Made by a program: the position numbers and the translations under genes. 64,000 nt of DNA from Obrimoposthia wandeli. Taxonomy: Eukaryota. Below are positions 2,245-52,333 of the stretch, in pieces. Numbering within the stretch: position 1 is the stretch's first letter; each line of letters opens with the position of its first letter. The notes under the pieces are model-generated. The model saw only the letters and a program-made list of their open reading frames with translations. It did not search any database and was not told the DNA's origin. The stretch lies in assembly GCA_977020255.1 (NCBI GenBank), contig CDROCS010004130.1, positions 1-64,000 on the forward strand, in the 5' to 3' direction.

Positions 2245-2246
2245 TT

Positions 2247-2668: not shown

Positions 2669-2935
2669 TTACAATACATCTACATTAACTTGGACTATAA
2701 AATTAATGATAAAAACCACAATAAATAATGACCGTTGTTAGCCTTTTTATTGATTTTGATTATTACGATTAATTTAACATATTAACAATATGCTTGGTAA
2801 CTTTAGTTACATATCGCAATTACTTTAAATATTTAAAAATAATAATGGATTGTTAATAAATAAAGTACTGTTACGAATCCTAAAAAATTAATAATTCATA
2901 CTTTTAAAAACTCTATTTTAAGATAACTTCGCTAC

Positions 2936-7308: not shown

Positions 7309-7318
7309 TAGTATTCTT

Positions 7319-8212: not shown

Positions 8213-8301
8213 TTAACAAAAATACATTTTAATTATAATTAACTTGATATTATAACGTTGTATCATAAATATATTTTTAAGACCTTTGAAAAAAATTAAA
8301 T

Positions 8302-10275: not shown

Positions 10276-10331
10276 TCTTTACATTTTTTAACAAAAGCAA
10301 ATGTATTATTTTTAGAATAATAAATGAACAA

Positions 10332-32400: not shown

Positions 32401-34225
32401 TCCTTTACCTTTTATCACCCAAATTGGTGATACTACTCTATCAAACGCAGTGACCATTTCTTCAGATGGGGTAAATGGAGCTGATGCAACCTTTTATGAT
32501 TGGTCAATTGTTAAAATAGCGAATAAAAACATAACTCATAATGCTAATCAAAAACACTTAGCCTTATTTGTAAATAGTGTTGATGCCAGTTCAAATCCAA
32601 TTGAATTTAGTATTCAAAATGATACTGAATTAAATATTAGCTGGTATTTAAAATTAGATGGGTTTATTGATTTGGAAGGAGAATCTCAATTAGTTCAAGG
32701 CGTAGAAAGTATATTGGATAATGCAAGTACAGGTTATATTGAAAGAGACCAACAAGGTGAAGGAAATACTTTTAGATATAATGATTGGTCGTCACCAGTT
32801 ATAAAAACAAATACTGCTAAGGGTACTCCATTTTCAATTGCTGATGTTTTAAGAGATGGTACTGATCCTGATATTCCAGGCTCAATTACGTATACATCCG
32901 GTTATGATGGTGTAATTTCGCCAATGACATTAAGTTCTTATTGGATGTATAAATATGCTAATTTACCATCGGATACTTATAGCGCATGGGATCATATTGG
33001 TTCTACTGGAGATTTATATGAAGGTGAAGGTTTTATTATGAAAGGAACTGGAGCTGCTTCCGATCAAAATTATGTATTCGAAGGAAAACCAAATAACGGA
33101 AACATTAGTTTTACTATTAATAATGGTAATGACTACTTAGTTGGTAATCCATATCCTTCCGCTCTAGATGCTAATAAATTTTTATCAGACAATGCAGACA
33201 TCATTACTGGTGTGTTATATTTTTGGGAGCATTGGGGAAATGACTCCCATATTCTATCCGAATATCAAGCAGGTTACGGAAGTTACAATTTATCAGGAGG
33301 ATTAATTGGCACCTCTGGAAACTCGCATCCTAACGTTAGTCAAACAGGAAGTGGATCTAAAACTCCACAACGATTTATTCCTGTGGGACAAGGATTCTTT
33401 GTTGTTGCTCAAGATGGTGGTACTATCGAGTTTAACAATAGTCAGCGTACTTTTATCAAAGAATCTTCAAGATCCTCAATTTTTATGAAAGGTACTAAAT
33501 CTAAAAATGAGCCTGCAATCAACAAAATTGAATTAGACCTAAGGCCAAAAATAAGATTAGGATTTGATGCTCCTAAAGTAGATCATCGTCAATTATTATT
33601 AACTATTGATGAAAATGCAACTGATGCTATAGATTGGGGATATGATGCCGAAATTTATGAAGTTTTCAATGATGATATGTATTGGATGATTGAAAACAAG
33701 AAGTACGTAATCCAAGGAACTAATGAAATTAATCTGGAAAAAGAAATATCATTAGGTATCCAAACTTTAGAAGGTGGAGACATTACAATAAATATAGATG
33801 AATTAGAAAATTTAGATGAAAATACTGAATTATATATCAAAGACAATTCAACAGGAGAAACCTATAATATTATTGAAAAACCTTTTAAAGTAAATTTAGA
33901 ACCGGGAGAATATTTTAATAGATTTTCGCTAACATTTCAACCTAGATTAAAAACTATAAATGAAATCGACATAATTGAAGGAATTATTATTCATATGGAT
34001 AATTCAAATTCAGTTCTTCAAATAAAAAAGGTGATAGATGCAAAAATTAAAACTATTAATTTAATTAATTATTTAGGACAAACAGTTAAATCATGGAATA
34101 AAAACCTTCTCAATAGAACCTTAAACTTACCTCTAAATAATAATAATAATAATAATACGGGAATGTATATGGTTCAAATACATACAGAATACGGAGAAAT
34201 TATAAAACAAATTATAATTAATTAG
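29426..34225 (+). CDS. Large T9SS cargo protein A (TSP3-like Ca-binding repeats, lectin-like jelly-roll, LamG, type-A-like CTD)
   Basis: Signal peptide; many DxDxDG repeats; LamG motif WIHIAASF...LYING...[13 protein letters not shown]; C-terminal NYLGQTVK...GMYMVQI...KQIIIN. Confidence 0.85.
34136..34156 (+). repeat. (AAT)7 microsatellite (poly-Asn) within the T9SS CTD of protein A
   Basis: Encodes [14 protein letters not shown]; the paralog has LPISTNSGAY. Confidence 0.85.
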
Positions 34226-37500: not shown

Positions 37501-39129
37501 AGTTCAAACCCAATTGAATTTAGTATCCAAAATGATAGTGAATTAAATATTAGTTGGTATTTAAAATTAGATGGTTTTATTGATTTAGAAGATGAATCAC
37601 AACTGATACAAGGAATAGAAAGTGTATTAGATGATTCAAGTTCTGGATATATTGAGCGAGATCAACAAGGTATTGGAAATAAATACAGATACAACGATTG
37701 GTCCTCACCTGTTATAAAAACAAATACAGCTAATGGAAGTACCTTTACCATTGCTGATATTTTAAAGGATGGTACAAATTCAAGTTTACCAGGAGCAATC
37801 GCATATAATAATTCAGGTTACGATGGTTCAACTTCTCCTATGACATTGAGTACTTACTGGATGTATAAGTATGTGGACTCACCCTATGGTGATTATAGCT
37901 CTTGGGAACAAATTAGAAGTTCTGGAAATTTAAACCCTGGAGATGGTTTTTTAATGAAAGGAACTGGAGCTTCATCAGATCAAAACTATGTTTTTAAGGG
38001 CAAACCAAATAATGGTGATATCTCCATAAATATATCACCAAACTATGGATATTTAGTCGGAAACCCTTATCCGTCTGCTTTAGATGCAAATCAATTTATA
38101 AATGACAATTCAACTTCAATAACTGGAACAATCTACTTTTGGGAACATTATGGAGGTGAAAGTCATATTTTAGCTGAATATCAGGCTGGTTACGCTACCT
38201 ATAATTTATCTGGGGGAATTGCTGCTGCTTCACCTCATCCAATGGTTGATCAAACAGCTCCCTCCGCTCCAAAAATGCCGGAAAGATATATTCCTGTGGC
38301 ACAAGGCTTCTTTGCTCAAGGAGATTCAGATGGAGGAACCATTATTTTTAACAATGGACAACGCACATTTATAAAAGAAGCATCTACAAACTCAATTTTT
38401 ATGAAAGGGGTTAAATCTAAAAAAGTAAATGAAACTATAGACCTTGAACAGGATTTAAGGCCAAAAATCAGACTTGGATTTAGAGCTCCTAAAATTAATC
38501 ATAGACAGTTACTGTTAACCATTGATGAAAAATCAACAGATTCAATTGATTATGGTTACGATGGAGAAGTTTATGAACTATTTGAAGATGATATGTTTTG
38601 GGTAATTGAAGATGAAAAATATGTAATTCAGGGAACAAATAAAATCAATTTAGAAAAAGAAATCCCAATTGGAATACAAACTCTAAAAGGTGGGGAAATT
38701 ACAATTAGCATAGACGAATTAGAAAATTTAGATGAAACTACAGAATTATATATCAAAGACAATTTAAATGGAGAAACCATTAAAATAAATGATCAGCCGT
38801 TTAAAACTTATTTAGAAGCCGGAGAATATAAGAATAGATTTGTTTTAGCTTTTCAACCTAAATTGAAATCAATAAATGAGATTAAACTAATTGATGGAAT
38901 ACGTATTTATATGAACAACAATAGTTCTAAACTAAACATTAAAAAAATGATTGATGTAAATATTGAAAACATTACTCTATTTAATTATTTAGGTCAAAAA
39001 ATTAAAGAATGGAATTCCAATTTTGAAGAGATAATAATTTCACTTCCTATTAGTACAAATTCTGGAGCATATATTGTCAATGTAAAAACTTCAGAAGGTG
39101 TCATCTCCAAAAAAATAATTAAAAAATAA
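34591..39129 (+). CDS. Large T9SS cargo protein B, paralog of A
   Basis: Signal peptide; shares the TSP3-like/LamG/C-terminal two-thirds with A (e.g. [10 protein letters not shown] vs [40 protein letters not shown]) but has different N-terminal modules. Confidence 0.85.
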   Translation: MKQKITFFNKIITLLFLLFLFSNLLHGQTIVWQEDFTYSDHTVVGTANRWNTVISGSPNYIKVLSNELRANHLIDEQIFETESINISAYSKVDISVDLRTVVLGNMEDADYIKVFYILDGGVETLFNINGTNINDLNPITASQTSLSGTTLVIKIRVKNSASNETYGIDNILVIEQPTAFFDSDNDGIDDNIDIDDDNDGIKDIDEENTCRLSPSGTTATYKFLNETFGTGSRTTINTTYNATTTYCYEDGTVGTNTGSCPSLNSKILDDGEYCVVSKITGTVASDPENIHGDLAWYQGADHTGDTDGRMAVFNASFTPGVFYETTITGVLSNMPITYSFWALNIMAQSTFPGSILPDITVQFLDTSNNVLTSINTGQFGRCSGGIADNSCENGVWKQFTTSVNLGNVNEFIVRFINNAPGGGGNDLAIDDILISQTLCDADKDGVADLFDLDSDNDGIPDIVECGNGQFSNGTAKIPTGVWVDTNSNGMHDAAESTTALDSDGDGVPNYLDLDSDNDTIFDVDESGAGNSGDSNFQNGDGDINGDGVGDGTDTDAFRETDINSDSVLEYFTDGILDVYDFFEGGTLNTSYGNQNQGSTGVGWENYAIDTDNDGTPDYIDLTSNGSTFDIDGTLYSSLDADLNGIIDDSTDSDGDGIVNLFDTDDAVFGSPRDLNQKLQLYFDGRNDYTEDSSVIDGWSEATIMGWIKIDPTATGSQIILGQDKFYLELKADKKIEINANGTIVSNTTALNTNRWVHLAGTYSSSNSKLKLYVNGQIIDSTNVTGALPSDASPFTIGRKPNTNSNYFKGYFDEIRVFNKELSENELHKMIYQEIENNSGIVRGSVIPLDVSNYVNTTTDTPLAWTFLKRYFRMDTYKDDIIDDLTTTTIDTGSGAKIYNVKIIEVQSAPLPFITQTGDTTLANAVDIPSDGVLGTDATTHDWSIVKIEHEKITHNANQKHLGLFVNSIDTSSNPIEFSIQNDSELNISWYLKLDGFIDLEDESQLIQGIESVLDDSSSGYIERDQQGIGNKYRYNDWSSPVIKTNTANGSTFTIADILKDGTNSSLPGAIAYNNSGYDGSTSPMTLSTYWMYKYVDSPYGDYSSWEQIRSSGNLNPGDGFLMKGTGASSDQNYVFKGKPNNGDISINISPNYGYLVGNPYPSALDANQFINDNSTSITGTIYFWEHYGGESHILAEYQAGYATYNLSGGIAAASPHPMVDQTAPSAPKMPERYIPVAQGFFAQGDSDGGTIIFNNGQRTFIKEASTNSIFMKGVKSKKVNETIDLEQDLRPKIRLGFRAPKINHRQLLLTIDEKSTDSIDYGYDGEVYELFEDDMFWVIEDEKYVIQGTNKINLEKEIPIGIQTLKGGEITISIDELENLDETTELYIKDNLNGETIKINDQPFKTYLEAGEYKNRFVLAFQPKLKSINEIKLIDGIRIYMNNNSSKLNIKKMIDVNIENITLFNYLGQKIKEWNSNFEEIIISLPISTNSGAYIVNVKTSEGVISKKIIKK

Positions 39130-39265: not shown

Positions 39266-41764
39266 ATGAATAATAGATTTTTAACCAGTTTATTAACTCT
39301 TATGTTAATTGTTGGTATGACTTCAACAGTTGAAGCCCAAAAAAAGAGAAAAAGAAAAAAAGATAAAAAAGAAGCTATTGCACCGAAGCCAAAACCTAAA
39401 AAAGGAGCAATACAACCATATAACAAGGTGGTAACAAAAGATGCCAAAACCGATGAAGGATTGTTTAAGGTTCATACTATTGATGAAAAATACTTATATG
39501 AAATACCAGATTCTTTATTAGAAAAAGAAATGTTAATGGTAACTCGTATTGCAAAAAACACTTCAAATAACAGAAATTTTGGAGGCCAAAAAGCAAATAC
39601 TCAAGTATTGCGTTGGCAAAAAAAAGGAAAGAAAATTGTATTAAGAGTTGTTTCTCATAAAACTGTAGCTGACGAAAATCTTCCAGTCCATGAAGCAGTT
39701 GTAAATTCAAATTTTGAGCCTGTATTATTTTCATTTCCTATAAAAGCTTTTAATAAAGACACAACTGCAACTGTAATTGATGTTACTGATTTATTTTCTA
39801 CAGATGTAAAAGCTTTAGGTTTACCTAGATATGTTAGAAAAGGTTATAAAATCACTCGCTTAGATTCAAAAAAATCATTTATAGAAAGCTTAAAAAGTTA
39901 TCCTTTAAATATTGAATCTCGTCATGTAAAAACGTATGCTGCCTCTGCTCCACCTTCAAATTCAAGTACAGGAACTGTTTCAGTTGAAATGAGTAACTCA
40001 ATGATATTGTTACCTGAAGTTCCTATGAAAAGAAGAATTTTTGATGAAAGAGTTGGATGGTTTACTTCAAGTCAAACTGATTATGGTTCTGAAGCTCAAA
40101 AAAGTGAAAAAATTACTTTCTTAGACAGATGGAGATTGGAAGTTAAAGATGAAGATATTGAAAAATTTAAAAGAGGTGAATTAGTTGAACCAAAAAAACA
40201 AATTGTTTATTACATAGATAGAGCTACTCCAAAAAAATGGAGAAAATACATTAAACAAGGTATTGAAGACTGGCAAGTTGCTTATGAAGCTGCAGGTTTT
40301 AAAAATGCAATTATTGCAAAAGATGCTCCAACAAAAGAAGAAGACCCTGAATGGACACCAGAAGATGTTCGTTATTCGGTTGTTAGATATTTAGCTTCTC
40401 CAATTCCTAATGCAAATGGTCCTCACGTAAGTGATCCAAGATCTGGAGAAATTTTAGAATCAGACATTAACTGGTATCACAATGTAATGAGCTTATTAAA
40501 GGGGTGGTTTTTTGTACAAACAGCAGCTATTAATCCAAATGCTCAAAGTGCTGAATTTAAAGATGAAGTAATGGGTGAACTTATTAAATTTGTTTCTTCT
40601 CATGAAGTTGGTCATACTTTAGGTTTACCTCATAATATGGGTAGCAGCTGTGCTTATGCTGTTGATTCACTTCGTTCAGCAAGTTTCACAAAAAAACACG
40701 GTACTGCTCCTTCAATTATGGATTATGCTCGTTTTAATTATATAGCTCAACCAGGTGATGAAGGAGTTGCGTTAATGCCTAATATTGGTGTTTATGATAA
40801 GTATGCAATGAGCTGGGGTTACAGACCTATTTTAGATGTTAAAACTGCTGCAGACGAAAAAGAAACATTAGATAGCTGGATTTTAAAACACGCTGGAGAT
40901 CCTTTGTATCGTTTTGGTCACCAACAAGCTGGTGGTGTAGTTGATCCAAGTTCTCAAACAGAAGATTTAGGTGATGATGCAATTAAAGCAAGTACTTATG
41001 GAATTGCAAACCTAAAACGAATTGTTCCAAATTTAATTGAATGGACTTCTGAAAAAGGTAAAAATTATGATGATTTAAAGACTATGTATGGTCATGTATT
41101 ATCACAATACAACAGATATATGGGACATGTTTCTTCAAACTTAGGTGGTGTTTATGAAAATTATAAAACATACGACCAAGAAGGAACAGTATACAGTCAT
41201 GTAGATAAAACTCATCAAAAGAATTGCTTGAAATTCATTAACAATCAATTATTTAAAACGCCAACCTGGCTAATTGACAAAGATATCATTGGAAGAACTG
41301 AATATTCTGGTATTACTGAAAGAATTAGAAATACACAGGTAAAAACGTTAGATAACATCTTAGATTTAGGTAGAATGATGCGTATGATTGAAAATGAAAC
41401 TTTAAATGGAAAAGAAGCGTATACTTTAATTTCAATGATGACTGACTTACGCAATGGTATTTGGTCTGAGTTAAGAACTGGTAAAAAAATTGACACTTAC
41501 CGTAGAAATTTACAAAGAGCCTATGTTGAAAAACTTGGGAATTTAACAACTGCCAAAAACATTAAGAAATACAATGGTTCCAGTTATGTAAAAAACACTG
41601 CAGTAACTGTAAAACAGTCTGACATTATTCCAATAGTTAGAGGTGAACTTAACAGAATTAAAAGAGATGCCAAAAGAGCTGCAAATGCAACTACAAATAC
41701 TACCAGAAAATATCATTTACTTGATATTGTTGAACGTATTGATGCTATTTTAGATCCTAAATAA
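39266..41764 (+). CDS. Zinc-dependent metalloprotease (metzincin; DUF5117/DUF4953 EcxA-like architecture)
   Basis: Signal peptide; HEVGHTLGLPHN, SIMDY (Met-turn), DPRSGEILESDI. Confidence 0.9.
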   Translation: MNNRFLTSLLTLMLIVGMTSTVEAQKKRKRKKDKKEAIAPKPKPKKGAIQPYNKVVTKDAKTDEGLFKVHTIDEKYLYEIPDSLLEKEMLMVTRIAKNTSNNRNFGGQKANTQVLRWQKKGKKIVLRVVSHKTVADENLPVHEAVVNSNFEPVLFSFPIKAFNKDTTATVIDVTDLFSTDVKALGLPRYVRKGYKITRLDSKKSFIESLKSYPLNIESRHVKTYAASAPPSNSSTGTVSVEMSNSMILLPEVPMKRRIFDERVGWFTSSQTDYGSEAQKSEKITFLDRWRLEVKDEDIEKFKRGELVEPKKQIVYYIDRATPKKWRKYIKQGIEDWQVAYEAAGFKNAIIAKDAPTKEEDPEWTPEDVRYSVVRYLASPIPNANGPHVSDPRSGEILESDINWYHNVMSLLKGWFFVQTAAINPNAQSAEFKDEVMGELIKFVSSHEVGHTLGLPHNMGSSCAYAVDSLRSASFTKKHGTAPSIMDYARFNYIAQPGDEGVALMPNIGVYDKYAMSWGYRPILDVKTAADEKETLDSWILKHAGDPLYRFGHQQAGGVVDPSSQTEDLGDDAIKASTYGIANLKRIVPNLIEWTSEKGKNYDDLKTMYGHVLSQYNRYMGHVSSNLGGVYENYKTYDQEGTVYSHVDKTHQKNCLKFINNQLFKTPTWLIDKDIIGRTEYSGITERIRNTQVKTLDNILDLGRMMRMIENETLNGKEAYTLISMMTDLRNGIWSELRTGKKIDTYRRNLQRAYVEKLGNLTTAKNIKKYNGSSYVKNTAVTVKQSDIIPIVRGELNRIKRDAKRAANATTNTTRKYHLLDIVERIDAILDPK

Positions 41765-41792
41765 TTTATATATTCAACATTAATCTGTTGAC

Positions 41793-41826
41793 AAAAAACC
41801 TTGAATTTAAATTCAAGGTTTTTTTT
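41793..41826. terminator. Intrinsic terminator
   Basis: AAAAAACCTTGAATTT/AAATTCAAGGTTTTTTTT. Confidence 0.9.
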
Positions 41827-41952
41827 ATATCAAATTTTAACTATAACATTCTTATTACAATGAAATTCAGCTTTGTCAATTAAGGATTCTATATAAAAAA
41901 TATGACCAGTTATTAAAAAAAACAGTCTGTTTGTTTATTAATTTTAAGAATC

Positions 41953-42020: not shown

Positions 42021-42575
42021 ATGAAAAATCTTCCTTCCCGCAGATCGTTTTTGCAAAAAACTGCAATGGCAACTACTGGAGTAGCTCTACTTTCTTCAAA
42101 CACAGTGATTAATGCATTAACAAAAGATGATAGTCCATTTTCTGGATACAATCCTTATGCTGAAGAAAAAACAGATTTAAGAGCTTCATCATTATTTGGT
42201 AAACATTTATTTGTAAATGGAAAAATTTACAATAAATCAGGTAATTCAACAGTATCAAATATAACTATTGAAGTATGGCATTTATCTCCTAATTCAAAGA
42301 AATATAAACATAAAGCGAAGCTAAAAACCAATGGTTTTGGTGAATACAGTTTTATCACAGATTTCCCTAATAGAGAATATGGAAAAACAGCTAGGGTATA
42401 TTTTAAGGTAAAAAATAACAATACAACTTATTTTACCGAATTATTAGTAAACGATTTTGGTGCTAACATAACAGGAAAACATTGGGAAGAGAACCACCAA
42501 TTAGGTGAGAAATTATTTCCTTTTAAAGAGGGTACATTAGACTCTTCAACTATAACATTTAACATTTCAATTTAA
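42021..42575 (+). CDS. Tat-signal protein with intradiol ring-cleavage dioxygenase-like fold, probably non-catalytic
   Basis: SRRSFLQK twin-arginine motif. GKIYN...IEVWH...Y...KTNGFGEYSFITDFP matches the fold, but KTARVY replaces RPxHIH. Confidence 0.65.
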   Translation: MKNLPSRRSFLQKTAMATTGVALLSSNTVINALTKDDSPFSGYNPYAEEKTDLRASSLFGKHLFVNGKIYNKSGNSTVSNITIEVWHLSPNSKKYKHKAKLKTNGFGEYSFITDFPNREYGKTARVYFKVKNNNTTYFTELLVNDFGANITGKHWEENHQLGEKLFPFKEGTLDSSTITFNISI

Positions 42576-42600
42576 ACTAAAATTTAAAAAACAATTTATT

Positions 42601-43113
42601 ATGGAACCATATTTAGGACAAATACAAGCATTCGGTTTTAACTTTGCTCCAAGAGGCTGGGCACTTTGTGATGGACAATTATTATCTATTGCTTCATATT
42701 CCGCTGTATTTTCATTATTAGGAACAACGTTTGGTGGTGATGGAAGAACGACTTTTGGATTACCAGATTTACGTGGTAGAAGTATGGTACATGTAGGAAA
42801 TGGTCCTGGATTAGATAGCATTCGTTGGGGTGAAAAAGGTGGTAACTATCAAACTTTTTTAACTACCGCAAATATGCCTTCACATAACCATAATATATCT
42901 GTTGCTGTAAATTCAAGTAAAGGAGAAGAGCCAAATGCAACATCTATTCTTTCAAATCATTCAGGAGCTTTTCAAGAAGAATCTAATGGTACTGTTTTAG
43001 GAGGTGTTTCTCAAAGTAATGTTGGTAGTAACCAAGGAATAAATACTAGAAATCCATACGTAGGAATTTATCATTCAATAGCATTAACTGGTGTTTTTCC
43101 TTCTAGAAGTTAA
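42601..43113 (+). CDS. Phage tail-collar domain protein (MdpB/'microcystin-dependent protein' type)
   Basis: LGQIQAFGFNFAPRGWALCDGQLLSI...LLGTTFGGDGRTTFGLPDLRGR, MPSHNH, C-terminal ALTGVFPSRS; no signal peptide. Confidence 0.92.
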   Translation: MEPYLGQIQAFGFNFAPRGWALCDGQLLSIASYSAVFSLLGTTFGGDGRTTFGLPDLRGRSMVHVGNGPGLDSIRWGEKGGNYQTFLTTANMPSHNHNISVAVNSSKGEEPNATSILSNHSGAFQEESNGTVLGGVSQSNVGSNQGINTRNPYVGIYHSIALTGVFPSRS

Positions 43114-43116
43114 AAT

Positions 43117-44250
43117 ATGAAGATTGGACTTTTACTACCAAGGTCGGATATGTTTCCTTCTCTTGCTTTGGACTTTTTAAACGGTTTAAAACTTGTTTTT
43201 GATAATTCTAATAATTGTTTAGAATTACCTGAACTAATAATTGAAGGTGTTGGTAACGCAACTGATGATTCTATTATTAGAATTGCTGAAAAAATGATAT
43301 TGCAAGAAAATGTTGATTTAACTATTGCTTTTTGTGGAATTTTAAAACTTAAAGAATTAGTTAAAATTTATGACTCTTATAATAAACCTTTAATTCATCT
43401 AGATTTAGGTGGTAATTTTCTTACAAAAAAACATATCAGTAAAAATGTAATTCACTATTCATTAAACTTATGGGAGTCGTGTTACAAAGCTGGAGTTTAT
43501 GCTGCAAATCAATTTGGTAAAAAAGCTGCATTAGCAATTTCATTTTATGATGGAGGCTATCAATTAGTTGAAAGTTTTGTTGATGGTTTCACAGAAAATG
43601 GAGGTGAAATAGTTTTTAACTATGTAAGTCCAATGGAATATAAAAATGAAAATTTTGAAAATTTAGTTTCAGGTATTGAAAACTCAAAACCTGATGTTGT
43701 TTTTTCAGTTTTTAGTTACAAAGAAGGAGTAAAAGTTTTAAATGCCTTTTCACAATCAAAATTTAATGATAAAATTCCTTTAGTAGCAATACCATTAATG
43801 ACAGATGAATCAATAAATAAGGAAGAATATCAACTTCCGAATGTTTTCTCAATAGCATCTTGGGCATTTGAAGATAGCTCTATTGAAATGAAAAGTTTTA
43901 TTTCTTCTTATAAAAAGAAATATGACCAAACACCTAATATTATAAGTTTATTAGGTTTTGAAATTGGAGCTATTGTAAATTATTGTCTTAATCACAATAA
44001 AACCATTCCGGTTAAAATTGGAGAATATTTCAAAAATAAAGAATTAACATCCCCAAGAGGTAAATTGGTGTTTAACAATTTTAATGAAACAAAAGCCACT
44101 GAATTCAAGCTTAGAAAATTTGAATTTAATAATACTAACTATCAAAATACAGTAATAGGAAGAATTGAAGGATCAATTTCTAAAAATAGTCATTTAAAAA
44201 AAGAAGAAATTTCATTTTCTGGTTGGCAAAATCCATATATCTGTACTTAA
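43117..44250 (+). CDS. Type-I periplasmic-binding-protein fold (branched-chain amino acid SBP-like) lacking a signal peptide
   Basis: Begins directly with MKIGLLLPRS; alternating beta/alpha pattern, FYDGGYQ, LTSPRGKLVF, C-terminal GWQNPYICT; no ABC permease or ATPase nearby. Confidence 0.7.
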   Translation: MKIGLLLPRSDMFPSLALDFLNGLKLVFDNSNNCLELPELIIEGVGNATDDSIIRIAEKMILQENVDLTIAFCGILKLKELVKIYDSYNKPLIHLDLGGNFLTKKHISKNVIHYSLNLWESCYKAGVYAANQFGKKAALAISFYDGGYQLVESFVDGFTENGGEIVFNYVSPMEYKNENFENLVSGIENSKPDVVFSVFSYKEGVKVLNAFSQSKFNDKIPLVAIPLMTDESINKEEYQLPNVFSIASWAFEDSSIEMKSFISSYKKKYDQTPNIISLLGFEIGAIVNYCLNHNKTIPVKIGEYFKNKELTSPRGKLVFNNFNETKATEFKLRKFEFNNTNYQNTVIGRIEGSISKNSHLKKEEISFSGWQNPYICT

Positions 44251-44261
44251 AGAATTCAATT

Positions 44262-47200
44262 ATGAAAAAAACTACTTTATTCACCTTAATCCTTACCCTT
44301 CTTCTTGGGTTAGCCGATGGTTTTTCACAAAAAGTTGCTATTATAGGAATGAACCATCTTTCGGGTTCAACCACTGATGATGGATTTACTTTTGTTGCAA
44401 CAGAAATTATCCCTGCTGGAGAAATAATTTATTTCACAGATAATGAATACGATGACGCTGGTAATTCTTTTACATTTGGTATTGGAACATCCGGTGAAGG
44501 TGTAATTATATACACTGTAGGATCTGGAGGATTAGCTATAGGCGATGTTGTTTTCATAAACGAAACAGGTAGTAATACTTTCACAGTATCTTGTTCTTCT
44601 GGTATAAATTGTGGTACTGCAATTGCATCCTCAACGTTTAACAATGGAAGTTTTAATTTATCTACTAATGGAGATGGGCTATATGCCTATTCAGATTCTA
44701 ATCAAAATGTGACTGATGGTATAACAGCAATATATTCTGTAATGTACACAGGTTCTGGTGAATCACCCAGTCAAAATGGAGGAACAATTCCAAATAATGC
44801 AAACCCAATAAACGATTATCCAAATGCAATTATAGTCGATGGCTTTAATAACGATGGAGATGTTTTTATAGGCCCAGACCGAGTAGAATATAAATTCAAT
44901 CCAATTTCTTTTAGAGATGCGGTAAACAAAGTTTTATTACAAAATCCTGTAAATTATTTACAATATGTTTCCCAACAAGGTCTGTCAGTAGTTCCTTTTA
45001 CAAATTTAAATTTAACTGGTTCAAATCCAGTATTAACTGTAGCTGCTTCGCCAACCTCAGTGCTTGAAAATAGCGGTACAAGTATGGTTTATACTTTTAC
45101 ACTTGATGCAGCGGCAGCTGGTCCAATAACAGCCAACTTCACTGTAGGTGGAACAGCAACCTTTACGTCTGATTATACACAGTTCGGAGCTGTTAGTTTT
45201 AGTACAACCACTGGAACAGTAACAATTCCTAATGGAGCTACAAGTGCTACAGTTACAATAACACCATCAAGCGATACTGTATTAGAACCAGACGAAACAA
45301 TCGTTTTAACACTTACAGCCGGAACTGGTTATGATTCTGGTAGCCCAAGCTCTTCAACTATAAATATTGTTAATGATGATTCAACATCAATCACTCCTAT
45401 TGTAGCTTTAACAGGAATTAATACAAATACTACAGAAGGTTTTTCTTTTGTTGCTTTAAATGATATAGTTGCAGGAACCGTAATTTATTTTACAGATAAT
45501 GAATTTAATAACTCATCCCTTACTTTTAATTCTGGTGAATTTGTTGCTTCTTGGACTGCTCCAATAGGCGGTATTCAAAGAGGAGAAGTAATTGTAGCAA
45601 AAGAAACAAGTACTAATTCTTTCACTACAAATTGCAACAATGGCACATGCGGTCTTGTAACTCTGCATGCTGGTAGCTTCGCTCTTGCTACAAATGGCGA
45701 AACAATTTCGGCATATACAGATACTAACAATGACCCAACTGATGGTGTTACAGAAATACACTCTGTTCTATATACGGGCTCAACCACTTCTGGAGGTAAT
45801 ATTCCTAGTATTGAAGATCCTACTTCAATATATGTTGGTTCTATTCTTGTAGATGGTTTTACAACAACAGCACCTGACAGAACTGAGTACAATCCTACTT
45901 TAAGAACTGTTGATGTAGATCAAGCAAATTTTCAAAACCCAACTAATTGGTTATATTCACAAACTAATCAAGATCTTTCCATTGTACCTTTTAGTAATAT
46001 AATTATTACAACAGGTACTTCTAACCCAATTGCCACTGTTTCAATTTCACCTTCAAATGTTGTTGAAGACAGCGGAAATACAATGGTATATACTTTTATA
46101 TTAGATGCGCCTGCAAGCGGAGATGTTATTCTAAACTTTACTGTAGTAGGAACAGCAACCTTTTCAACTGACTATACAGTAACGGGATCCACAAATTTTA
46201 ATACTACAACTGGTAGTGTAACAATTTTAGATGGTACTTCTTCAGTATCTGTTAGTATTACTCCTGTTGTAGATATAACTGTTGAAACATTAGAAGATAT
46301 TGAACTTATAATTGCATCAGGTATTGGATACAATGGAGGTAGTCCAAATAATGCTATAGGAACTATTAGTAATGACGACACAAGCAATTCAGATCCTTTA
46401 GTTGCAATTTCTGGTATGTCTCATTTAACTACCGATGGTTTTTCATTTGTAGCAATTAGAGATATTCCAGCTAATACTGTGGTATATTTTAGTGAAGATG
46501 AATTTGACAATACTTCATTAAAATTCTCATCTGGTGAAGCCCTAATTCAATGGACATCTCCAGCTAGTGGTATAATTAATAAAGGAGATGTAATTGTAAT
46601 TACGGAAACTGGAACAGATTCATTTACTCCAACTTGTACTAATTCTTTAGGTAATGGTTGTGGAACTATTGTTGTAGTTCAGGGAAATTCAAACCTTTCT
46701 ACAGGAGGAGATTCTTTATATGCCTTTACAGATGATGATGCTGATCCTACAAATGGTGTAACAGACATATATGCCGTAATGTACACCGGAGGTCCTTTAG
46801 GAGTTGGAGGAAATATTCCCACAAATGAAGACCCTTCAGGTATATATCTCAATGCATTAGTTGTAGATGGCTTCCCTATATCAAATCCAAATAGATCAGA
46901 ATATGATGAAACCAAAAGAAATGTATTAGTTGAGAATGCCGATTTTGAAAATGTGACAAATTGGGTACATGCCCAATCTCTTCCAGCTTTATCAACTACT
47001 CAATTCACTAATCTTGCATTATTAATTGCTCCTACTATTACCTTTAATGATATTAATAAAACATACGGAGAAACCAGTTTTGATTTAGCTGCAACATCAA
47101 ATTCAACCGGGAATATCACATATTCTATAATTGGATTAGCTAATGGAACTAGCCTTTCTGGAACAAATAATGAAACTGTAACTTTAGGAAATACAGGTAC

Positions 47201-50200
47201 AGTAACGATTAGGGCTACACAAGCTGCAGATGGTAGTACGTATGCAAAAGGAACCAAAGATATTACTTTTACTATTGACAAAGTAGCTTTAACAGTAACA
47301 GCCAATGCAAGTCAGACCAAAATTTATGGTGCAGCTGATCCAACCACCTTAGACTATACCATCACAGGATTTGTGAATGGAGATGTAGAAGGTGACTTAG
47401 ACACACCAGTAAGCATCTCAAGAGCTGCAGGAGAAAATGTAGGGAACTACACAATCACTCCGGCTGGAGCAGCAGATACAAACTATACAGTAAGCTTTGT
47501 CACTGCACAATTCAGCATTACTAAAGCAACTTTAACAGTAACTGCCAATGCGAGTCAAACCAAAGTATATGGTGCAACCGATCCAACATTGACCTACACC
47601 ATCACAGGATTTGTGAATGGTGATGTAGAAGGAGACTTAGACACACCAGTAAGCATCGCAAGAGCGGTAGGAGAAAATGTAGGAAACTACACGATCACTC
47701 CAGCTGGAGCAGCAGATACAAACTATACAGTAAGCTTTGTCACTGCACAATTCAGCATTACTAAAGCAACTTTAACAGTAACTGCCAATGCGAGTCAAAC
47801 CAAAGTATATGGTGCAACCGATCCAACATTGACCTACACCATCACAGGATTTGTGAATGGTGATGTAGAAGGAGACTTAGACACACCAGTAAGCATCGCA
47901 AGAGCGGTAGGAGAAAATGTAGGAAACTACACAATCACTCCGGCTGGAGCAGCAGATACAAACTATACAGTAAGCTTTGTCACTGCACAATTCAGCATTA
48001 CTAAAGCAGCTTTAACTGTTACTGCCAATGCGAGTCAAACCAAAGTATATGGTGCAACCGATCCAACATTGACCTATACCATCACAGGATTTGTGAATGG
48101 AGATGTAGAAGGAGATTTAGACACACCAGTAAGCATCGCAAGAGCGGTAGGAGAAAATGTAGGAAACTACACGATCACTCCATCGGCAGCAGCAGATGCA
48201 AACTATACGGTAAGCTTTGTCACTGCACAATTCAGCATTACTAAAGCAACTTTAACTGTTACTGCCAATGCGAGTCAAACCAAAGTATATGGTGCAACCG
48301 ATCCAACATTGACCTATACCATCACAGGATTTGTGAATGGTGATGTAGAAGGTGACTTAGACACACCAGTAAGCATCTCAAGAGCTGCAGGAGAAGATGT
48401 AGGGAACTACACAATCACTCCAGCTGGAGCAGCAGATACAAACTATACAGTAAGCTTTGTCACTGCACAATTCAGCATTACTAAAGCAACTTTAACAGTA
48501 ACTGCCAATGCAAGTCAAACCAAAGTATATGGTGCAACTGATCCAACATTGACCTACACCATCACAGGATTTGTGAATGGTGATGTAGAAGGAGACTTAG
48601 ACACACCAGTAAGCATCTCAAGAGCTGCAGGAGAAAATGTAGGGAACTACACAATCACTCCGGCTGGAGCAGCAGATACAAACTATACAGTAAGCTTTGT
48701 CACTGCACAATTCAGCATTACTAAAGCAACTTTAACAGTAACTGCCAATGCGAGTCAAACCAAAGTATATGGTGCAACCGATCCAACATTGACCTACACC
48801 ATCACAGGATTTGTGAATGGTGATGTAGAAGGAGACTTAGACACACCAGTAAGCATCTCAAGAGCTGCAGGAGAAAATGTAGGGAACTACACAATCACTC
48901 CGGCTGGAGCAGCAGATACAAACTATACAGTAAGCTTTGTCACTGCACAATTCAGCATTACTAAAGCAGCTTTAACTGTTACTGCCAATGCGAGTCAAAC
49001 CAAAGTATATGGTGCAACCGATCCAACATTGACCTATACCATCACAGGATTTGTGAATGGAGATGTAGAAGGAGATTTAGACACACCAGTAAGCATCGCA
49101 AGAGCGGTAGGAGAAAATGTAGGAAACTACACGATTACTCCATCAGCAGCAGCAGATGCAAACTATACGGTAAGTTTTGTCACTGCACAATTCAGCATTA
49201 CTAAAGCAACTTTAACAGTAACTGCCAATGCGAGTCAAACCAAAGTATATGGTGCAACCGATCCAACACTCACCTACACCATCATAGGATTTGTGAATGG
49301 TGATGTAGAAAGTGATTTAGACACACCGGTAAGTATCGCTAGAGCTACAGGAGAAGATGTAGGAAACTACACCATTATGCTGTCTGGCGGTTTCGACAAT
49401 AATTATTCGTTCAACTTGTACAATGGAATATTTACTATTAATAAAAAAGAAATAACCATTACGGCAGATCCGAAATCAAAAATATATTGCGATACGGATC
49501 CAGTATTAACTTATCAAATTACTTCAGGTGACTTAGAGATTGGAGATAGTTTTTCAGGAAGTTTAATAAGAGTAATTGGGGAAAATGTGGGAAGCTATTC
49601 AATCTCCATTGGAACAATAAGTGCTGGTGAAAATTATAATACAAGTTTTGTAGCTGACGATTTATCAATAACAGTAAAAACAGTAACAATAAGCTGTCCA
49701 CCTGACATAGTAATAAATACAGATGAAGGAAGTTGTAGCGCAAGCAATGTTGCATTAGGTATAGTCTTAATTAATGGGGATGATTGTTCTGTTGCTATTG
49801 TTACGAATGATGCTCCAGATATTTTCCCTTCGGGAAATACTATTGTAACATGGATTGTAAAAGATAATTTAGGAAATATTACTGAAGTAACTTGTGAACA
49901 AATTGTTACTGTTAACGATAATGAAATCCCTACTGTTGTTACCAAAAACACCACTTTACAATTAAATGAATTTGGAACTGCAGTTATTACGACAAATGAC
50001 ATAGACAATGGATCTTCTGATAATTGTAGTATTGATTCTATAAATATCGACATAACTGATTTTGACTGTTCAGATCTGGGTGAGAATATTGTAACAATAA
50101 CTGTAACTGATATTCATGGGAATAGTTCTAACGAAGAGGCGATTGTAACAATTGAAGATAATACTCTACCAACTGTAATTACACAAAATATTTCTATTGA

Positions 50201-51320
50201 ATTAGATGAAGCTGGTAATGCAACAATTACAACAGCTGATATTGACAATGGTTCTACTGATAATTGTAGTATTGACACAATAAATATAGATAAAACTAAT
50301 TTTGATTGTTCAAATATTGGAGAGAACACTGTAACATTAACGATTACGGACATCAACAGTAATATAAGCAGTAATACTGCTATAGTAACAATAGTTGACT
50401 CCATTGCTCCTATTGCAATTTGTTCAGCACCATTTACAATTGAATTAGATGAAACAGGTAATGCCACAATTACTGCTGATGATATTAATAATGGAAGTAC
50501 GGATAATTGTACTATTGCTTCTTTAACTATTGATAAAGACTCTTTTGATTGTAACTCTATAGGTGATCAAACCGTAACATTAACGGTAACTGATAACAGT
50601 GGAAACAGCACAAATTGTGCAACTGTGATAACTGTAGTAGATACAACTGATCCATTGGTAATAACTCAAAATATTAGCATTGAATTAGATGAAAACGGAG
50701 AAGTAATAATTACTCCTGAAGACATTAATGATGGAAGTTTTGATAGTTGTGGGATTGCTTCAATGAGTTTAGATAAGGTAAGTTTTACGTGTCCTTCTTT
50801 AGGAGATCATACGGTTACTTTAACGGTTGTAGATGTTAATGGTAACAGTGCTTCTGAAATGGCTACTGTAACTTTCACTTCTGATGATTTAGATAACGAT
50901 GCTATTGCCGATGTATGTGATGATGACATGGATGGAGATGGTGTTAACAACGATATAGATAACTGTCCTTCCCATTCAAATCCAGATCAAGCCGATTTAG
51001 ATCGTAACGGAATTGGTAATGTTTGTGATACTGCTGAATTGGAAACACCTAAAGGTTTTTCTCCAAATGGTGACGGTGTTAATGATTATTTTATTATTGC
51101 AGGATTGCATAATTACCCAAATAACAACATAGAAATTTATAATCGTTGGGGGAATTTAGTCTATAAATCAAAGGACTACCAAAATTTCTGGGATGGTATT
51201 GCGCAAGGTAATGGTGTTCTTAATAAAAATGAGCTATTACCTGCAGGACCATACTTTTATGTATTAAGCATAGATGGTGGGACAAAAATAATAAAAGAAT
51301 GGGTTTATATTAATTATTAA
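44262..51320 (+). CDS. Giant T9SS type-B (CHU_C/gliding-motility CTD) adhesin with 3 repeated head domains, 2 Calx-beta-like domains, 10 MBG-like repeats, HYR-like and Cys-rich stalk repeats, and TSP3 repeats
   Basis: Signal peptide from ATG 44262 (MKKTTLF...GFSQ); C-terminal PKGFSPNGDGVNDYF...IYNRWG...WDG...YFYVL...VYINY. Confidence 0.92.
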   Translation: MKKTTLFTLILTLLLGLADGFSQKVAIIGMNHLSGSTTDDGFTFVATEIIPAGEIIYFTDNEYDDAGNSFTFGIGTSGEGVIIYTVGSGGLAIGDVVFINETGSNTFTVSCSSGINCGTAIASSTFNNGSFNLSTNGDGLYAYSDSNQNVTDGITAIYSVMYTGSGESPSQNGGTIPNNANPINDYPNAIIVDGFNNDGDVFIGPDRVEYKFNPISFRDAVNKVLLQNPVNYLQYVSQQGLSVVPFTNLNLTGSNPVLTVAASPTSVLENSGTSMVYTFTLDAAAAGPITANFTVGGTATFTSDYTQFGAVSFSTTTGTVTIPNGATSATVTITPSSDTVLEPDETIVLTLTAGTGYDSGSPSSSTINIVNDDSTSITPIVALTGINTNTTEGFSFVALNDIVAGTVIYFTDNEFNNSSLTFNSGEFVASWTAPIGGIQRGEVIVAKETSTNSFTTNCNNGTCGLVTLHAGSFALATNGETISAYTDTNNDPTDGVTEIHSVLYTGSTTSGGNIPSIEDPTSIYVGSILVDGFTTTAPDRTEYNPTLRTVDVDQANFQNPTNWLYSQTNQDLSIVPFSNIIITTGTSNPIATVSISPSNVVEDSGNTMVYTFILDAPASGDVILNFTVVGTATFSTDYTVTGSTNFNTTTGSVTILDGTSSVSVSITPVVDITVETLEDIELIIASGIGYNGGSPNNAIGTISNDDTSNSDPLVAISGMSHLTTDGFSFVAIRDIPANTVVYFSEDEFDNTSLKFSSGEALIQWTSPASGIINKGDVIVITETGTDSFTPTCTNSLGNGCGTIVVVQGNSNLSTGGDSLYAFTDDDADPTNGVTDIYAVMYTGGPLGVGGNIPTNEDPSGIYLNALVVDGFPISNPNRSEYDETKRNVLVENADFENVTNWVHAQSLPALSTTQFTNLALLIAPTITFNDINKTYGETSFDLAATSNSTGNITYSIIGLANGTSLSGTNNETVTLGNTGTVTIRATQAADGSTYAKGTKDITFTIDKVALTVTANASQTKIYGAADPTTLDYTITGFVNGDVEGDLDTPVSISRAAGENVGNYTITPAGAADTNYTVSFVTAQFSITKATLTVTANASQTKVYGATDPTLTYTITGFVNGDVEGDLDTPVSIARAVGENVGNYTITPAGAADTNYTVSFVTAQFSITKATLTVTANASQTKVYGATDPTLTYTITGFVNGDVEGDLDTPVSIARAVGENVGNYTITPAGAADTNYTVSFVTAQFSITKAALTVTANASQTKVYGATDPTLTYTITGFVNGDVEGDLDTPVSIARAVGENVGNYTITPSAAADANYTVSFVTAQFSITKATLTVTANASQTKVYGATDPTLTYTITGFVNGDVEGDLDTPVSISRAAGEDVGNYTITPAGAADTNYTVSFVTAQFSITKATLTVTANASQTKVYGATDPTLTYTITGFVNGDVEGDLDTPVSISRAAGENVGNYTITPAGAADTNYTVSFVTAQFSITKATLTVTANASQTKVYGATDPTLTYTITGFVNGDVEGDLDTPVSISRAAGENVGNYTITPAGAADTNYTVSFVTAQFSITKAALTVTANASQTKVYGATDPTLTYTITGFVNGDVEGDLDTPVSIARAVGENVGNYTITPSAAADANYTVSFVTAQFSITKATLTVTANASQTKVYGATDPTLTYTIIGFVNGDVESDLDTPVSIARATGEDVGNYTIMLSGGFDNNYSFNLYNGIFTINKKEITITADPKSKIYCDTDPVLTYQITSGDLEIGDSFSGSLIRVIGENVGSYSISIGTISAGENYNTSFVADDLSITVKTVTISCPPDIVINTDEGSCSASNVALGIVLINGDDCSVAIVTNDAPDIFPSGNTIVTWIVKDNLGNITEVTCEQIVTVNDNEIPTVVTKNTTLQLNEFGTAVITTNDIDNGSSDNCSIDSINIDITDFDCSDLGENIVTITVTDIHGNSSNEEAIVTIEDNTLPTVITQNISIELDEAGNATITTADIDNGSTDNCSIDTINIDKTNFDCSNIGENTVTLTITDINSNISSNTAIVTIVDSIAPIAICSAPFTIELDETGNATITADDINNGSTDNCTIASLTIDKDSFDCNSIGDQTVTLTVTDNSGNSTNCATVITVVDTTDPLVITQNISIELDENGEVIITPEDINDGSFDSCGIASMSLDKVSFTCPSLGDHTVTLTVVDVNGNSASEMATVTFTSDDLDNDAIADVCDDDMDGDGVNNDIDNCPSHSNPDQADLDRNGIGNVCDTAELETPKGFSPNGDGVNDYFIIAGLHNYPNNNIEIYNRWGNLVYKSKDYQNFWDGIAQGNGVLNKNELLPAGPYFYVLSIDGGTKIIKEWVYINY
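47280..49670 (+). repeat. Tandem array of 240-bp (80-aa MBG-like) units: 9 near-identical plus 1 divergent
   Basis: Lines at 47521, 47761, 48001, 48241, 48481, 48721, 48961 and 49201 all start CTAAAGCA. Unit 1 has a one-codon insertion; unit 9 diverges in its last quarter. Confidence 0.97.
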
Positions 51321-51332
51321 AAATAACAATTA

Positions 51333-52256
51333 ATGAAAATTATAGTAAAAAATATAGTAGTTGTATTATTTGTATTAATAGGATTACAAACTTATGGACA
51401 GCAAGAACCATTATATACACAATATCAAAATAATTTTAGTTTAATTAACCCGGCATACTCAGGAAGCAATGGTCATTTTACAACAACGGCTAATGTTAGA
51501 AGTCAATGGGCTGGAGAAGCTGGAAGCCCTCAAACACAAACATTTTCAATACAAGGAGCTGTTGGTAAAAATGTTGGATTAGGATTTTCGGTAGTACACG
51601 ATGAAGTGTTTATTTGGAATAATACAGAACTCTTTGCTGATTTTTCTTACTCACTTCAAATGTCAGAATCGTCAATACTATCATTTGGATTAAAAGCTGG
51701 AGGTAGTTTTTTAAATGTAAACCTACAAGACTTAGGTGTTTCTGATGATCCTTATTTAAGTGGTAACATTAATAAATTTAACCCAAATTTAGGGATAGGA
51801 GCATTATATTATAACGATAATTTTTATGCAAGTATCTCAACTGTTAATATTTTGGAAACCACTCATTATGATGAAAAAAGTACTGTTTCTAAAGCTTCTG
51901 ATGAAATGGTTTTCTATGGATCGGCAGGATATGTGTTTGATTTAGGAAATGAATTTAAATTCAGGCCTTCTTTTTTGTTAAGAGCTGTAAATGGAAGTCC
52001 GTTATCAACAGACCTATCAGCAAGTTTCTTATGGACTAATCGTTTAGAATTAGCCATTTCTCACAGATTTGACTCATCAATCTCTGGTTTACTTCAAGTG
52101 CGAGTAAATGACAATGTTAAACTTGGATATTCTTACGACAAATTAACTAGTAACCTTGGGAACTATAATAGTGGTTCACATGAAATAAGTTTAGTTTTTG
52201 ATATGGGTTTAACTGGTAAACATGCAACTAAAAAGAAGATGCCTTTCTACTGGTAA
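51333..52256 (+). CDS. T9SS PorP/SprF-family outer-membrane protein
   Basis: QQEPLYTQY...INPAYSG...RSQWAG...SPQTQT, GYSYD, SGSHEISL; lies directly after a type-B CTD protein, as expected for the family. Confidence 0.92.
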   Translation: MKIIVKNIVVVLFVLIGLQTYGQQEPLYTQYQNNFSLINPAYSGSNGHFTTTANVRSQWAGEAGSPQTQTFSIQGAVGKNVGLGFSVVHDEVFIWNNTELFADFSYSLQMSESSILSFGLKAGGSFLNVNLQDLGVSDDPYLSGNINKFNPNLGIGALYYNDNFYASISTVNILETTHYDEKSTVSKASDEMVFYGSAGYVFDLGNEFKFRPSFLLRAVNGSPLSTDLSASFLWTNRLELAISHRFDSSISGLLQVRVNDNVKLGYSYDKLTSNLGNYNSGSHEISLVFDMGLTGKHATKKKMPFYW

Positions 52257-52278
52257 TACATCATGAAAATTCTAAAAT

Positions 52279-52312
52279 AAAAAATCAGCAATTGAAAGAT
52301 CGCTGATTTTTT
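52279..52312. terminator. Bidirectional intrinsic terminator
   Basis: AAAAAATCAGC-AATTGAAAGATC-GCTGATTTTTT between convergent genes. Confidence 0.85.
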
Positions 52313-52333
52313 ATTTTATATCAATCATTCAAT

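Follow-up and report, generated by a model that had tools for sequence, protein, structure and literature searches.

A two-gene module, consisting of one or more genes for a stand-alone phage tail-collar protein followed directly by a gene for a signal-less protein with the fold of a periplasmic substrate-binding protein (SBP), was found immediately upstream of genes for type IX secretion system (T9SS) cargo in the Bacteroidota. The module was identified at positions 42021 to 52256 of contig CDROCS010004130.1 (GenBank assembly GCA_977020255.1, Obrimoposthia wandeli), of which positions 1 to 64,000 (the window) were analyzed. The locus belongs to a marine Bacteroidota bacterium, and as loci from Lutibacter citreus (L001) and Lutibacter aestuarii (L039) share the downstream genes of the window, the organism is Lutibacter-like. 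The explanation proposed here as the best for this stretch, read from its sequence, is a single transcription unit built in two layers. The first is of a known kind: a giant T9SS adhesin and its cognate PorP/SprF protein make up an ordinary SprB/SprF-type pair. The second is undescribed, and its conserved core is the collar gene (or genes) with the SBP-like partner directly after. What is new is therefore the accessory module, which is widely conserved and is joined here to a secretion-cargo arrangement (the adhesin/PorP pair) that was already known, as was the kind of collar protein.

The initial annotation had placed five same-strand genes between two terminators. The open reading frames (ORFs) bore this out, with gaps of 25, 3, 11, and 12 nucleotides (nt) between the genes, as listed below with protein lengths in amino acids (aa); Tat denotes twin-arginine translocation and CTD a C-terminal domain.

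41793-41826, + strand: intrinsic terminator of the upstream Met-zincin gene, 14-bp stem followed by a T-run (5′ boundary)
42021-42575, + strand: ORF 1, Tat-signal pseudo-intradiol-dioxygenase, 184 aa, clade-specific accessory
42601-43113, + strand: ORF 2, stand-alone tail-collar protein, 170 aa, without signal peptide, with an invariant HxH motif
43117-44250, + strand: ORF 3, signal-less type-I periplasmic-binding-fold (SBP-like) protein, 377 aa, C-terminus GWQNPYICT
44262-51320, + strand: ORF 4, T9SS cargo adhesin, 2352 aa, type-B CTD
51333-52256, + strand: ORF 5, PorP/SprF family outer-membrane protein, cognate of the type-B CTD
52273-52318, both strands: bidirectional terminator of the PorP gene and a convergent MscS-type gene, 20-bp stem with A/T runs on both sides (3′ boundary)

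Both hairpins folded: the upstream one (within 41785-41835) at −14.2 kcal/mol (z, −4.85) and the downstream one, between the convergent genes (within 52265-52325), at −18.8 kcal/mol (z, −6.5). Searches of sequencing runs for evidence of co-transcription returned runs of unspecified type, probably from the source sample, and low-share metagenomes, with no identified RNA run among them. The five gene identities assigned at the outset, including a type-B CTD adhesin of ∼2,350 aa, were supported by profile and Foldseek searches. Genes flanking the unit (∼12 kb on each side) encode two Laminin_G_3 giants, a Met-zincin, an MscS-type channel, and a radical-SAM protein; as had been claimed, no phage, ABC permease, or aromatic-catabolic gene was among them. 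The description of two folds as repurposed was likewise sustained, as the SBP-like protein lacks a signal peptide and any transporter partner and neither His iron ligand is retained in the dioxygenase fold.

A collar/SBP-like couple upstream of T9SS cargo genes

For the neighborhood survey, 124 loci were retrieved with the SBP-like protein as the sole query, so that the neighboring genes found are unbiased. A first scan of one genome per species gave 42 loci, and a metagenome scan with five distant SBP-like proteins as queries (23 to 28% identity to that of the window) gave 80 more. In nearly every locus with neighboring sequence a collar gene adjoined the SBP-like gene, lying directly upstream of it in all but four. 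Among the Flavobacteriaceae/Saprospiraceae loci of the first scan, the SBP-like gene nearly always began 1 to 12 nt after the last collar gene, and the distance from it to the adhesin gene was either 10 to 20 nt or ∼120 nt. Of 52 complete genes directly 3′ of the SBP-like gene, 50 encoded a T9SS CTD; among other ORFs of ≥250 aa at these loci the proportion was 15 of 457, several of the 15 being downstream genes missed by the selection rule. The pattern held in each of four SBP-like clades (single linkage at ≥40% identity), which have diverged to ∼24% identity, and the CTD was confirmed by Pfam on nine representatives with unrelated passengers. Independent gene calls with precomputed Pfam assignments gave the order Collar, Peripla_BP_6, and a 2,388-aa CHU_C protein in Chitinophaga horti, and independent calls in Hufsiella ginkgonis gave two Collar genes, Peripla_BP_6, and a 3,801-aa MBG_2/CHU_C protein. 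By source names, the family is spread over Flavobacteriia, Saprospiria, Chitinophagia (Puia, Flavitalea, Dinghuibacter, and Chitinophaga), Sphingobacteriia, and Cytophagia. The collar and SBP-like genes are thus a fixed couple, across phyla when the more distant forms described below are included, and in Bacteroidota this couple holds a constant place immediately 5′ of T9SS cargo genes.

The survey also showed which parts of the five-gene unit are not general. The genes do lie between two terminators, but the unit is a composite, and the expectation that its small genes recur beside large secreted proteins held at essentially every related locus for the collar and SBP-like genes and in one clade only for the pseudo-dioxygenase gene. 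That clade comprises ∼34 Flavobacteriaceae/Saprospiraceae genome loci with the order pseudo-dioxygenase, one to four collars, SBP-like, and adhesin, in which the first ∼700 aa of the adhesin are homologous to the window adhesin. The pseudo-dioxygenase therefore had to be dropped as a general member. The same applies to PorP/SprF: a type-B CTD together with PorP was found only in the window, L001, and L039, and the other complete adhesins had type-A CTDs with no PorP gene after them, which makes PorP a partner of type-B CTDs only and places it outside the conserved unit.

A giant adhesin as the specific partner, also part of the initial annotation, was not upheld either, as any T9SS cargo appears to serve. 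Cargo lengths ranged from 390 to >3,800 aa, and the passengers included LTD/MBG domains, SprB repeats, cadherin, GEVED/fn3, Big_9, a cadherin-like type with CHU_C, and a 408-aa protein. A domain common to all downstream cargo was considered and rejected: single-linkage BLAST joined 80 of 94 N-termini, but in iterated hidden Markov model (HMM) searches they fell apart into three or more families whose only connection is through repeat domains. The constant partner is accordingly "a T9SS cargo" and not a head of the window type, and an HMM of the window adhesin head module identified nothing in distant loci.

A cyanobacterial occurrence, on a 10-kb contig of "Nostoc sp. XA013" (L035), was rejected, as the encoded protein has 18 SprB repeats and the contig is probably a Bacteroidota contaminant. 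Together with loci from an "Alteromonas" metagenome-assembled genome (MAG; L021) and a "Gemmatimonadales" MAG (L033, with frameshift-like breaks), it carries a Bacteroidota-type cassette with SprB repeats or a window-type head; all three are probably contaminant or mis-binned contigs.

The collar, the SBP-like protein, and their Tat-signal relatives

The collar protein matched PF07484 (E value, 2e−28; 98.4 bits against a cutoff of 24) from residue 6 onward and consists of the tip alone, with neither shaft nor signal peptide. Its H95-x-H97 motif was invariant across 33 aligned homologues, and the C-proximal NPY strand was conserved. T4 gp12 was its only relative in the PDB; the alignment was weak (E value, 0.004), and the HxH motif matches the gp12 metal site. 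Its PHROG matches were to the distal ends (tips) of phage tail fibers, and the protein is probably a metal-bound trimer like these tips. A phage tail fiber gene can be followed by a gene for its assembly chaperone or tip adhesin, as in gp37/gp38 and gp12/gp57A of T4. The window resembles this arrangement in having a fiber-tip gene with a partner gene directly 3′ and in retaining the gp12 HxH metal motif. It differs in that the collar has no shaft or baseplate-attachment domain and in that a type-I periplasmic-binding fold, not known for any fiber chaperone, is found in the 3′ partner. A phage origin of the SBP-like protein was rejected, as it had no relatives in viral contigs and no PHROG match.

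Existing annotations uniformly label the SBP-like protein an ABC transporter SBP. It matched Peripla_BP_6 (E value, 1e−24; 87.8 bits against a cutoff of 31.7) starting at residue 2, and as the ORF cannot be extended upstream, there is no space for a signal peptide. Signal peptides were also missing from its relatives in ∼115 loci. No permease and ATPase genes lay beside it in the window flanks or were seen in the 124 loci, so that it fails two defining features of a transport SBP, the export signal and the adjacent permease/ATPase. Its nearest solved relatives were the Tat-type aromatic-acid binding proteins 4ey3 and 4evq of Rhodopseudomonas (profile E value, ∼1e−23).

In Bacteroidota the family members are ∼379 aa long with the invariant C-terminus GWQNPYICT, and the five distant SBP-like proteins still terminate in GWxNPYLC(V/H), giving a core-wide tail motif, GWxNPY(I/L)C, that is kept down to 23% identity. 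This tail, x-N-P-Y-(L/I)-C-(V/T), resembles the C-proximal strand of the collar itself, x-(N/Q)-P-(Y/F)-L-(G/V/A)-(I/V/L). When scored on a position-specific scoring matrix (PSSM) made from 141 collar strands, the SBP-like tails had a median of 14.1 bits, compared with a collar self-score of 18.7 bits and a maximum of 4.1 bits for the C-termini of 869 other ORFs; only 3 of 331,395 7-mers elsewhere reached the tail median. On the same matrix, the motif was absent from the pseudo-dioxygenase and from the cargo. The GYNPY motif of the mature pseudo-dioxygenase was considered as a second strand mimic and rejected (median, −0.6 bits; not significant).

When 1.84 billion cluster representatives were searched exhaustively with a profile, 388 relatives of the SBP-like protein were identified at an E value of ≤1e−30. 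Many among the best 150 of these 388 were longer (410 to 442 aa), with the match beginning at residue 40 to 60. The N-terminal extensions that could be placed carried a twin-arginine (RR) motif in 31 of 33 cases, and 29 of the 33 extended proteins kept the tail as GWxNxY. Three contexts of this Tat-type form were informative, and all had collar genes. One read Collar, Collar, Tat-SBP-like, and the other two read Tat-SBP-like, three Collar genes, GNAT, and DUF6916 (L129:4211-7936 and contigs carrying P0310). DUF6916 and GNAT may be further fixed members of this form. An RR signal is therefore present on the SBP-like protein in one large branch and in no Bacteroidota version, and the collars never carry a signal peptide.

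The second of these layouts is that of the "MdpB" (COG4675) cassettes, which combine a collar triplet with a GNAT gene, for example, AM1_3686-3690 of Acaryochloris. Such cassettes thus have an unremarked Tat-signal member that is homologous to the third gene of the window and ends in the same C-terminal tail. Signal-less collars are shared by the two arrangements, and tandem collar paralogues are a feature of the cassettes. In contrast to the window, the SBP-like protein of the cassettes has its own RR signal and is encoded first, with GNAT and DUF6916 following. In the window, a single collar is accompanied by an SBP-like protein without a signal, by another protein that bears the RR signal, and by T9SS cargo; the absence of a GNAT gene was correctly noted at the outset. 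Other cellular tail-collar proteins are RhiB (rhiABC of Rhizobium leguminosarum) and MrpB (mrpAB of Microcystis), whose functions are unknown (PMC13133039 and PMC3328848). They, too, are PF07484 proteins that stand alone; their operons, on a chromosome or plasmid, contain no phage genes, and they are co-transcribed with other small proteins (PMC13133039 and PMC3328848). In contrast to the window, these operons belong to other phyla and have RhiA/MrpA-type partners, and these papers mention neither an SBP-like partner nor T9SS cargo. No paper linking tail-collar proteins with T9SS or describing the SBP-like partner was found in the full-text literature, mostly that of non-subscription journals.

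In the clade of the window, the only RR signal is on the dioxygenase-fold protein encoded first. Its signal matched TIGR01409 (18.4 bits against a cutoff of 16.7), and the RR motif was present in 33 of 33 homologues. As its Pfam match to Dioxygenase_C was below threshold (E value, 0.004; 16.9 bits against 27.3), the fold was checked with an AlphaFold2 (AF2) model built from 28 homologues (pLDDT, 84) and Foldseek, which confirmed the intradiol-dioxygenase fold (4ilv, E value of 8.5e−10 and probability of 1.0; also 5vg2 and 9yh9). The protein shares its small size and compact fold (TM score, ∼0.6 to 0.7) with the minimal secreted intradiol dioxygenases, namely, the SACTE_2871 domain (4ilv/4ilt), the spider-mite protein 5vg2, and the phage protein 9yh9. 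Unlike in these, both His iron ligands of the HxH strand are replaced: the profile alignment set the family motif ARIYFKV (ARVYFKV in the window, hence R-x-Y) opposite AHVHFKV and PHIHYRI of the enzymes. The former ligand positions vary among homologues (R, K, A, N, or T and Y, H, F, or G), and the loop bearing the first Tyr ligand is shortened, with Tyr positions judged from the alignment alone. The replaced ligands, their lack of conservation, and the shortened loop justify the label pseudo-dioxygenase, and the protein is predicted to be catalytically dead.

Proposed export of the module and competing explanations

The reading favored here, with a probability of about 0.4, is that signal-less collar complexes cross the inner membrane as passengers on a Tat substrate and then act in the envelope in partnership with the T9SS cargo. 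The collar would fold in the cytoplasm, probably as a metal-bound trimer, and would then dock onto the SBP-like protein via the C-terminal tail. The folded complex could next pass through Tat on a partner with an RR signal, which would be the pseudo-dioxygenase in the window and the SBP-like protein itself in other lineages. In the envelope, the complex might then act together with the T9SS cargo expressed alongside it, whether as a partner, as a handling factor, or as a lectin-like tip. The initial interpretation, that the small proteins might chaperone, decorate, or cap the filament, did not say how proteins without signals would get there, and Tat piggybacking is the answer proposed here.

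Co-export of this kind is established for Tat, where the hydrogenase small subunit carries the large subunit and DmsA carries DmsB. As proposed, the window would resemble these in encoding a signal-less folded partner and an RR-signal subunit in one operon. The known examples are cofactor-containing redox enzymes, whereas the passengers here would have a phage-fiber-tip fold and a binding-protein fold.

Several observations weigh against this reading. Neither the collar nor the SBP-like protein bears a signal peptide of its own, and passage of a periplasmic complex without a CTD across the outer membrane is unexplained. A search for an alternative RR-signal carrier in loci lacking the pseudo-dioxygenase found none nearby; the Chitinophagia, Sphingobacteriia, and Cytophagia versions have no nearby RR protein, and Tat piggybacking is thus not general unless the carrier is encoded elsewhere. 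RR signals are common in the SBP subfamily (4ey3 is named for one) and may be ancestral baggage on the SBP-like relatives. The likeness of the tail to the collar strand was noticed before it was tested and so is suggestive only, and the Fisher value for the CTD enrichment (4e−53) overstates independence, since the loci are phylogenetically related. No cargo gene adjoins the module in L028, and the SBP-like gene of L039 has lost a large internal segment beside an intact adhesin gene. Finally, signal-less group-transfer enzymes are encoded near the module, comprising PRMT5-like proteins in 39 loci, Fmt-like proteins in 12 loci, and also a sulfotransferase with APS kinase, PhyH, and an Asp/Arg hydroxylase; this clustering hints at cytoplasmic chemistry.

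Such chemistry is central to the alternative that survives best, which is nonetheless unlikely, that the collar and SBP-like proteins stay inside the cell. The SBP-like protein could be a ligand sensor of the AmiC type or an assembly or holding factor, and with the neighboring transferases, it could modify or control something required later by the T9SS cargo, such as the collar itself, a glycan or lipid anchor, or cargo production. AmiC provides a precedent as a cytoplasmic sensor of the Peripla_BP_6 type. The lack of a signal peptide on either protein across ∼115 loci and the lack of a nearby RR partner in most Bacteroidota versions fit this alternative, as do the recurrent adjacent signal-less transferases (in the Tat-type cassettes, GNAT). 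However, the unit encodes no DNA- or RNA-binding or signaling output domain. With regard to an AmiC-type sensor, the SBP-like protein is signal-less, no AmiR-like or other regulator was found within the unit, and AraC-type genes occurred only near some distant loci of the family. All characterized collar homologues are extracellular receptor-binding tips, relatives of the SBP-like protein with the same tail carry predicted Tat export signals, and fold-dependent cytoplasmic modifications would be incompatible with Sec-exported cargo.

The PRMT-like gene adjoins the module in 39 of the 124 loci and encodes a protein of ∼340 aa with S-adenosylmethionine-methyltransferase motif I and the sequence DDLLRTKRF (L010:7155-8189, − strand; L002:1210-2235, − strand; L036:7975-9006, + strand); some relatives match PF05185 (PRMT5). 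It is divergently oriented in Flavobacteriaceae and co-directional in Chitinophagaceae (27% identity between the groups; E value, 5e−35). It was rejected as an obligate member, as it is absent from the window and as distant homologues in Tenacibaculum and Olleya have no collars nearby, a point that also counts against the cytoplasmic alternative. In distant versions, signal-less modifying enzymes lie upstream of the collars (L126:103-5405; also L036, L037, L064, L082, and L105). These are APS kinase, PhyH, sulfotransferase, Asp/Arg hydroxylase, and Fmt-like formyltransferase, and the cluster suggests that a protein or an amino sugar is covalently modified. Upstream of the PRMT-like gene, some loci have an additional, distal collar gene preceded by a conserved ORF of ∼125 aa (MYTLNVQNDYIWQI...) without Pfam or PHROG match (L002:256-633, L021:6715-7092, and L022:3142-3579). 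One metagenomic clade has two further genes immediately 5′ of the collar, for a patatin-like phospholipase and for an AraC-type regulator with a membrane anchor (L067:8210-9250 and 5606-6775; also L068, L071, L078, L079, and L083).

It is slightly less likely still that the module makes an independent product, such as a lectin-like or competition factor or a RhiB/MrpB-type protein, which would share a promoter with surface proteins only because the same conditions call for both and would have no physical or biogenesis link to the cargo. The unrelated downstream passengers (LTD/MBG, SprB repeats, cadherin, GEVED/fn3, and small 400-aa proteins) are in keeping with this, as are the Tat-type cassettes outside the clade, which have no cargo gene, and L028, which has none adjacent. 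Collar cassettes of Acaryochloris are, moreover, co-regulated as a block with an acetyltransferase (PMC11633204). Set against this, the site directly 5′ of a CTD gene is kept in four clades at ∼24% identity despite cargo swaps, with gaps to the cargo of just 10 to 20 or ∼120 nt, and selection for co-expression alone rarely maintains a strict order over such distances.

Chance adjacency or inherited synteny of a remnant prophage tail gene and an orphan transporter SBP, suggested by the phage domain of the collar and the transporter annotation of the SBP-like protein, is highly improbable and was effectively refuted by the survey, given flanks without phage genes, an SBP-like family absent from viral contigs and lacking signal peptide, permease, and ATPase, the CTD enrichment of 50/52 against 15/457, and conservation of the pair across five classes from Flavobacteriia to Cytophagia. 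A role in anti-phage defense was also rejected, as PADLOC gave no meaningful match.

The Tat piggyback reading can be extended to a dedicated export-and-display pathway for domesticated phage fiber tips, operating in Bacteroidota and, in its Tat-signal form, in other phyla. An SBP-like escort would grip the collar trimer by its strand-mimicking tail, the complex would transit Tat in folded form, and the collar would serve as an exchangeable receptor-binding tip on T9SS surface proteins. This wider proposal is doubtful, but if true, it would provide a function for the RhiB, MrpB, and MdpB cassettes.

The current picture of T9SS comprises the cargo CTD, the translocon, and, for type B, a cognate PorP/SprF protein, with no conserved signal-less partners encoded next to the cargo. 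The two-gene fiber-tip/binding-fold module precedes T9SS cargo in at least five Bacteroidota classes, and the finding links this coupling to the widespread collar-triplet/GNAT cassettes, a puzzle since rhiABC (1992) and mrpAB (2001). Were piggybacking on Tat correct, it would add a class to the known Tat hitchhikers and a mechanism to those by which bacterial adhesins are armed; were it false, the strict gene coupling would still call for an explanation. The seven-residue tail, the RR signal, and the HxH motif offer experimental handles, and the pair is carried by C. horti, a cultured species with a complete genome.

The adhesin, PorP/SprF, and surrounding genes

The mechanical ORF of the adhesin begins at TTG 44223, and the ATG at 44262 was chosen as the start. 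From there, the N-terminus reads MKKTTLFTLILTLLLGLADGFSQ/K, a canonical Sec signal peptide as judged from the sequence, and homologues have the same N-terminal layout. Profile searches identified at least 10 MBG_2 stretches (MBG_2 E value, 7e−195), TSP_3, Calx-beta, and CHU_C, and the following features were mapped.

44328-45011, + strand: adhesin head module 1 (residues 23-250), with further copies at 45372-46121 and 46392-47141
47280-49372, + strand: tandem array forming the MBG-domain stalk, 8.7 copies of a 240-nt repeat, 94% match, Tandem Repeats Finder score of 3604
51042-51311, + strand: type-B T9SS CTD (residues 2261-2350), CHU_C E value of 1.7e−26, TIGR04131 E value of 6e−14 and 51.9 bits against a cutoff of 35

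Calx-beta follows head module 1. The head module had no Pfam match, and its AF2 model (pLDDT, 86) retrieved no solved structure by Foldseek. The model is predicted to be an LTD-like beta-sandwich (VIA Z of 8.0 to DUF4876 and 4.8 to the lamin tail Ig domain), and in AFDB it matched clusters of LTD-like PEP-CTERM, SLH, and T9SS proteins with E values down to 2.5e−11. The 240-nt MBG repeats are alike enough for recombinational length variation or assembly collapse. The PorP/SprF gene begins 12 nt after the adhesin gene, and its product matched PF11751 (E value, 1e−70) and TIGR03519 (E value, 9e−71; 238.6 bits against a cutoff of 90.55).

This layer is like the SprB/SprF pairs of Flavobacterium johnsoniae (sprCDBF operon), with a giant repetitive type-B CTD adhesin bearing a Sec signal, a PorP/SprF gene after it, and accessory genes upstream. 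The accessories in the window differ, being the collar, the SBP-like protein, and the Tat pseudo-dioxygenase and not SprC and SprD. Also unlike the SprB/SprF arrangement, the same accessory pair precedes type-A CTD cargo, for which no PorP is needed.

In L001 of L. citreus, a second adhesin and PorP pair lies directly upstream (1222-8216), giving tandem cargo/PorP units with one accessory module. In L039 of L. aestuarii, the SBP-like gene (9992-10393) retains only residues 2-58 and 299-377, and the pseudo-dioxygenase and collar genes are 452 nt apart, with a 118-aa ORF in between. As the adhesin and PorP are intact there, the accessory module may be decaying in this close relative. A second surface-protein cluster lies just upstream of the unit in the window, with tandem giant paralogues at 29426-34225 (1,599 aa) and 34591-39129 (1,512 aa), each with a central Laminin_G_3 domain, followed by the DUF5117/DUF4953 Met-zincin at 39266-41764.

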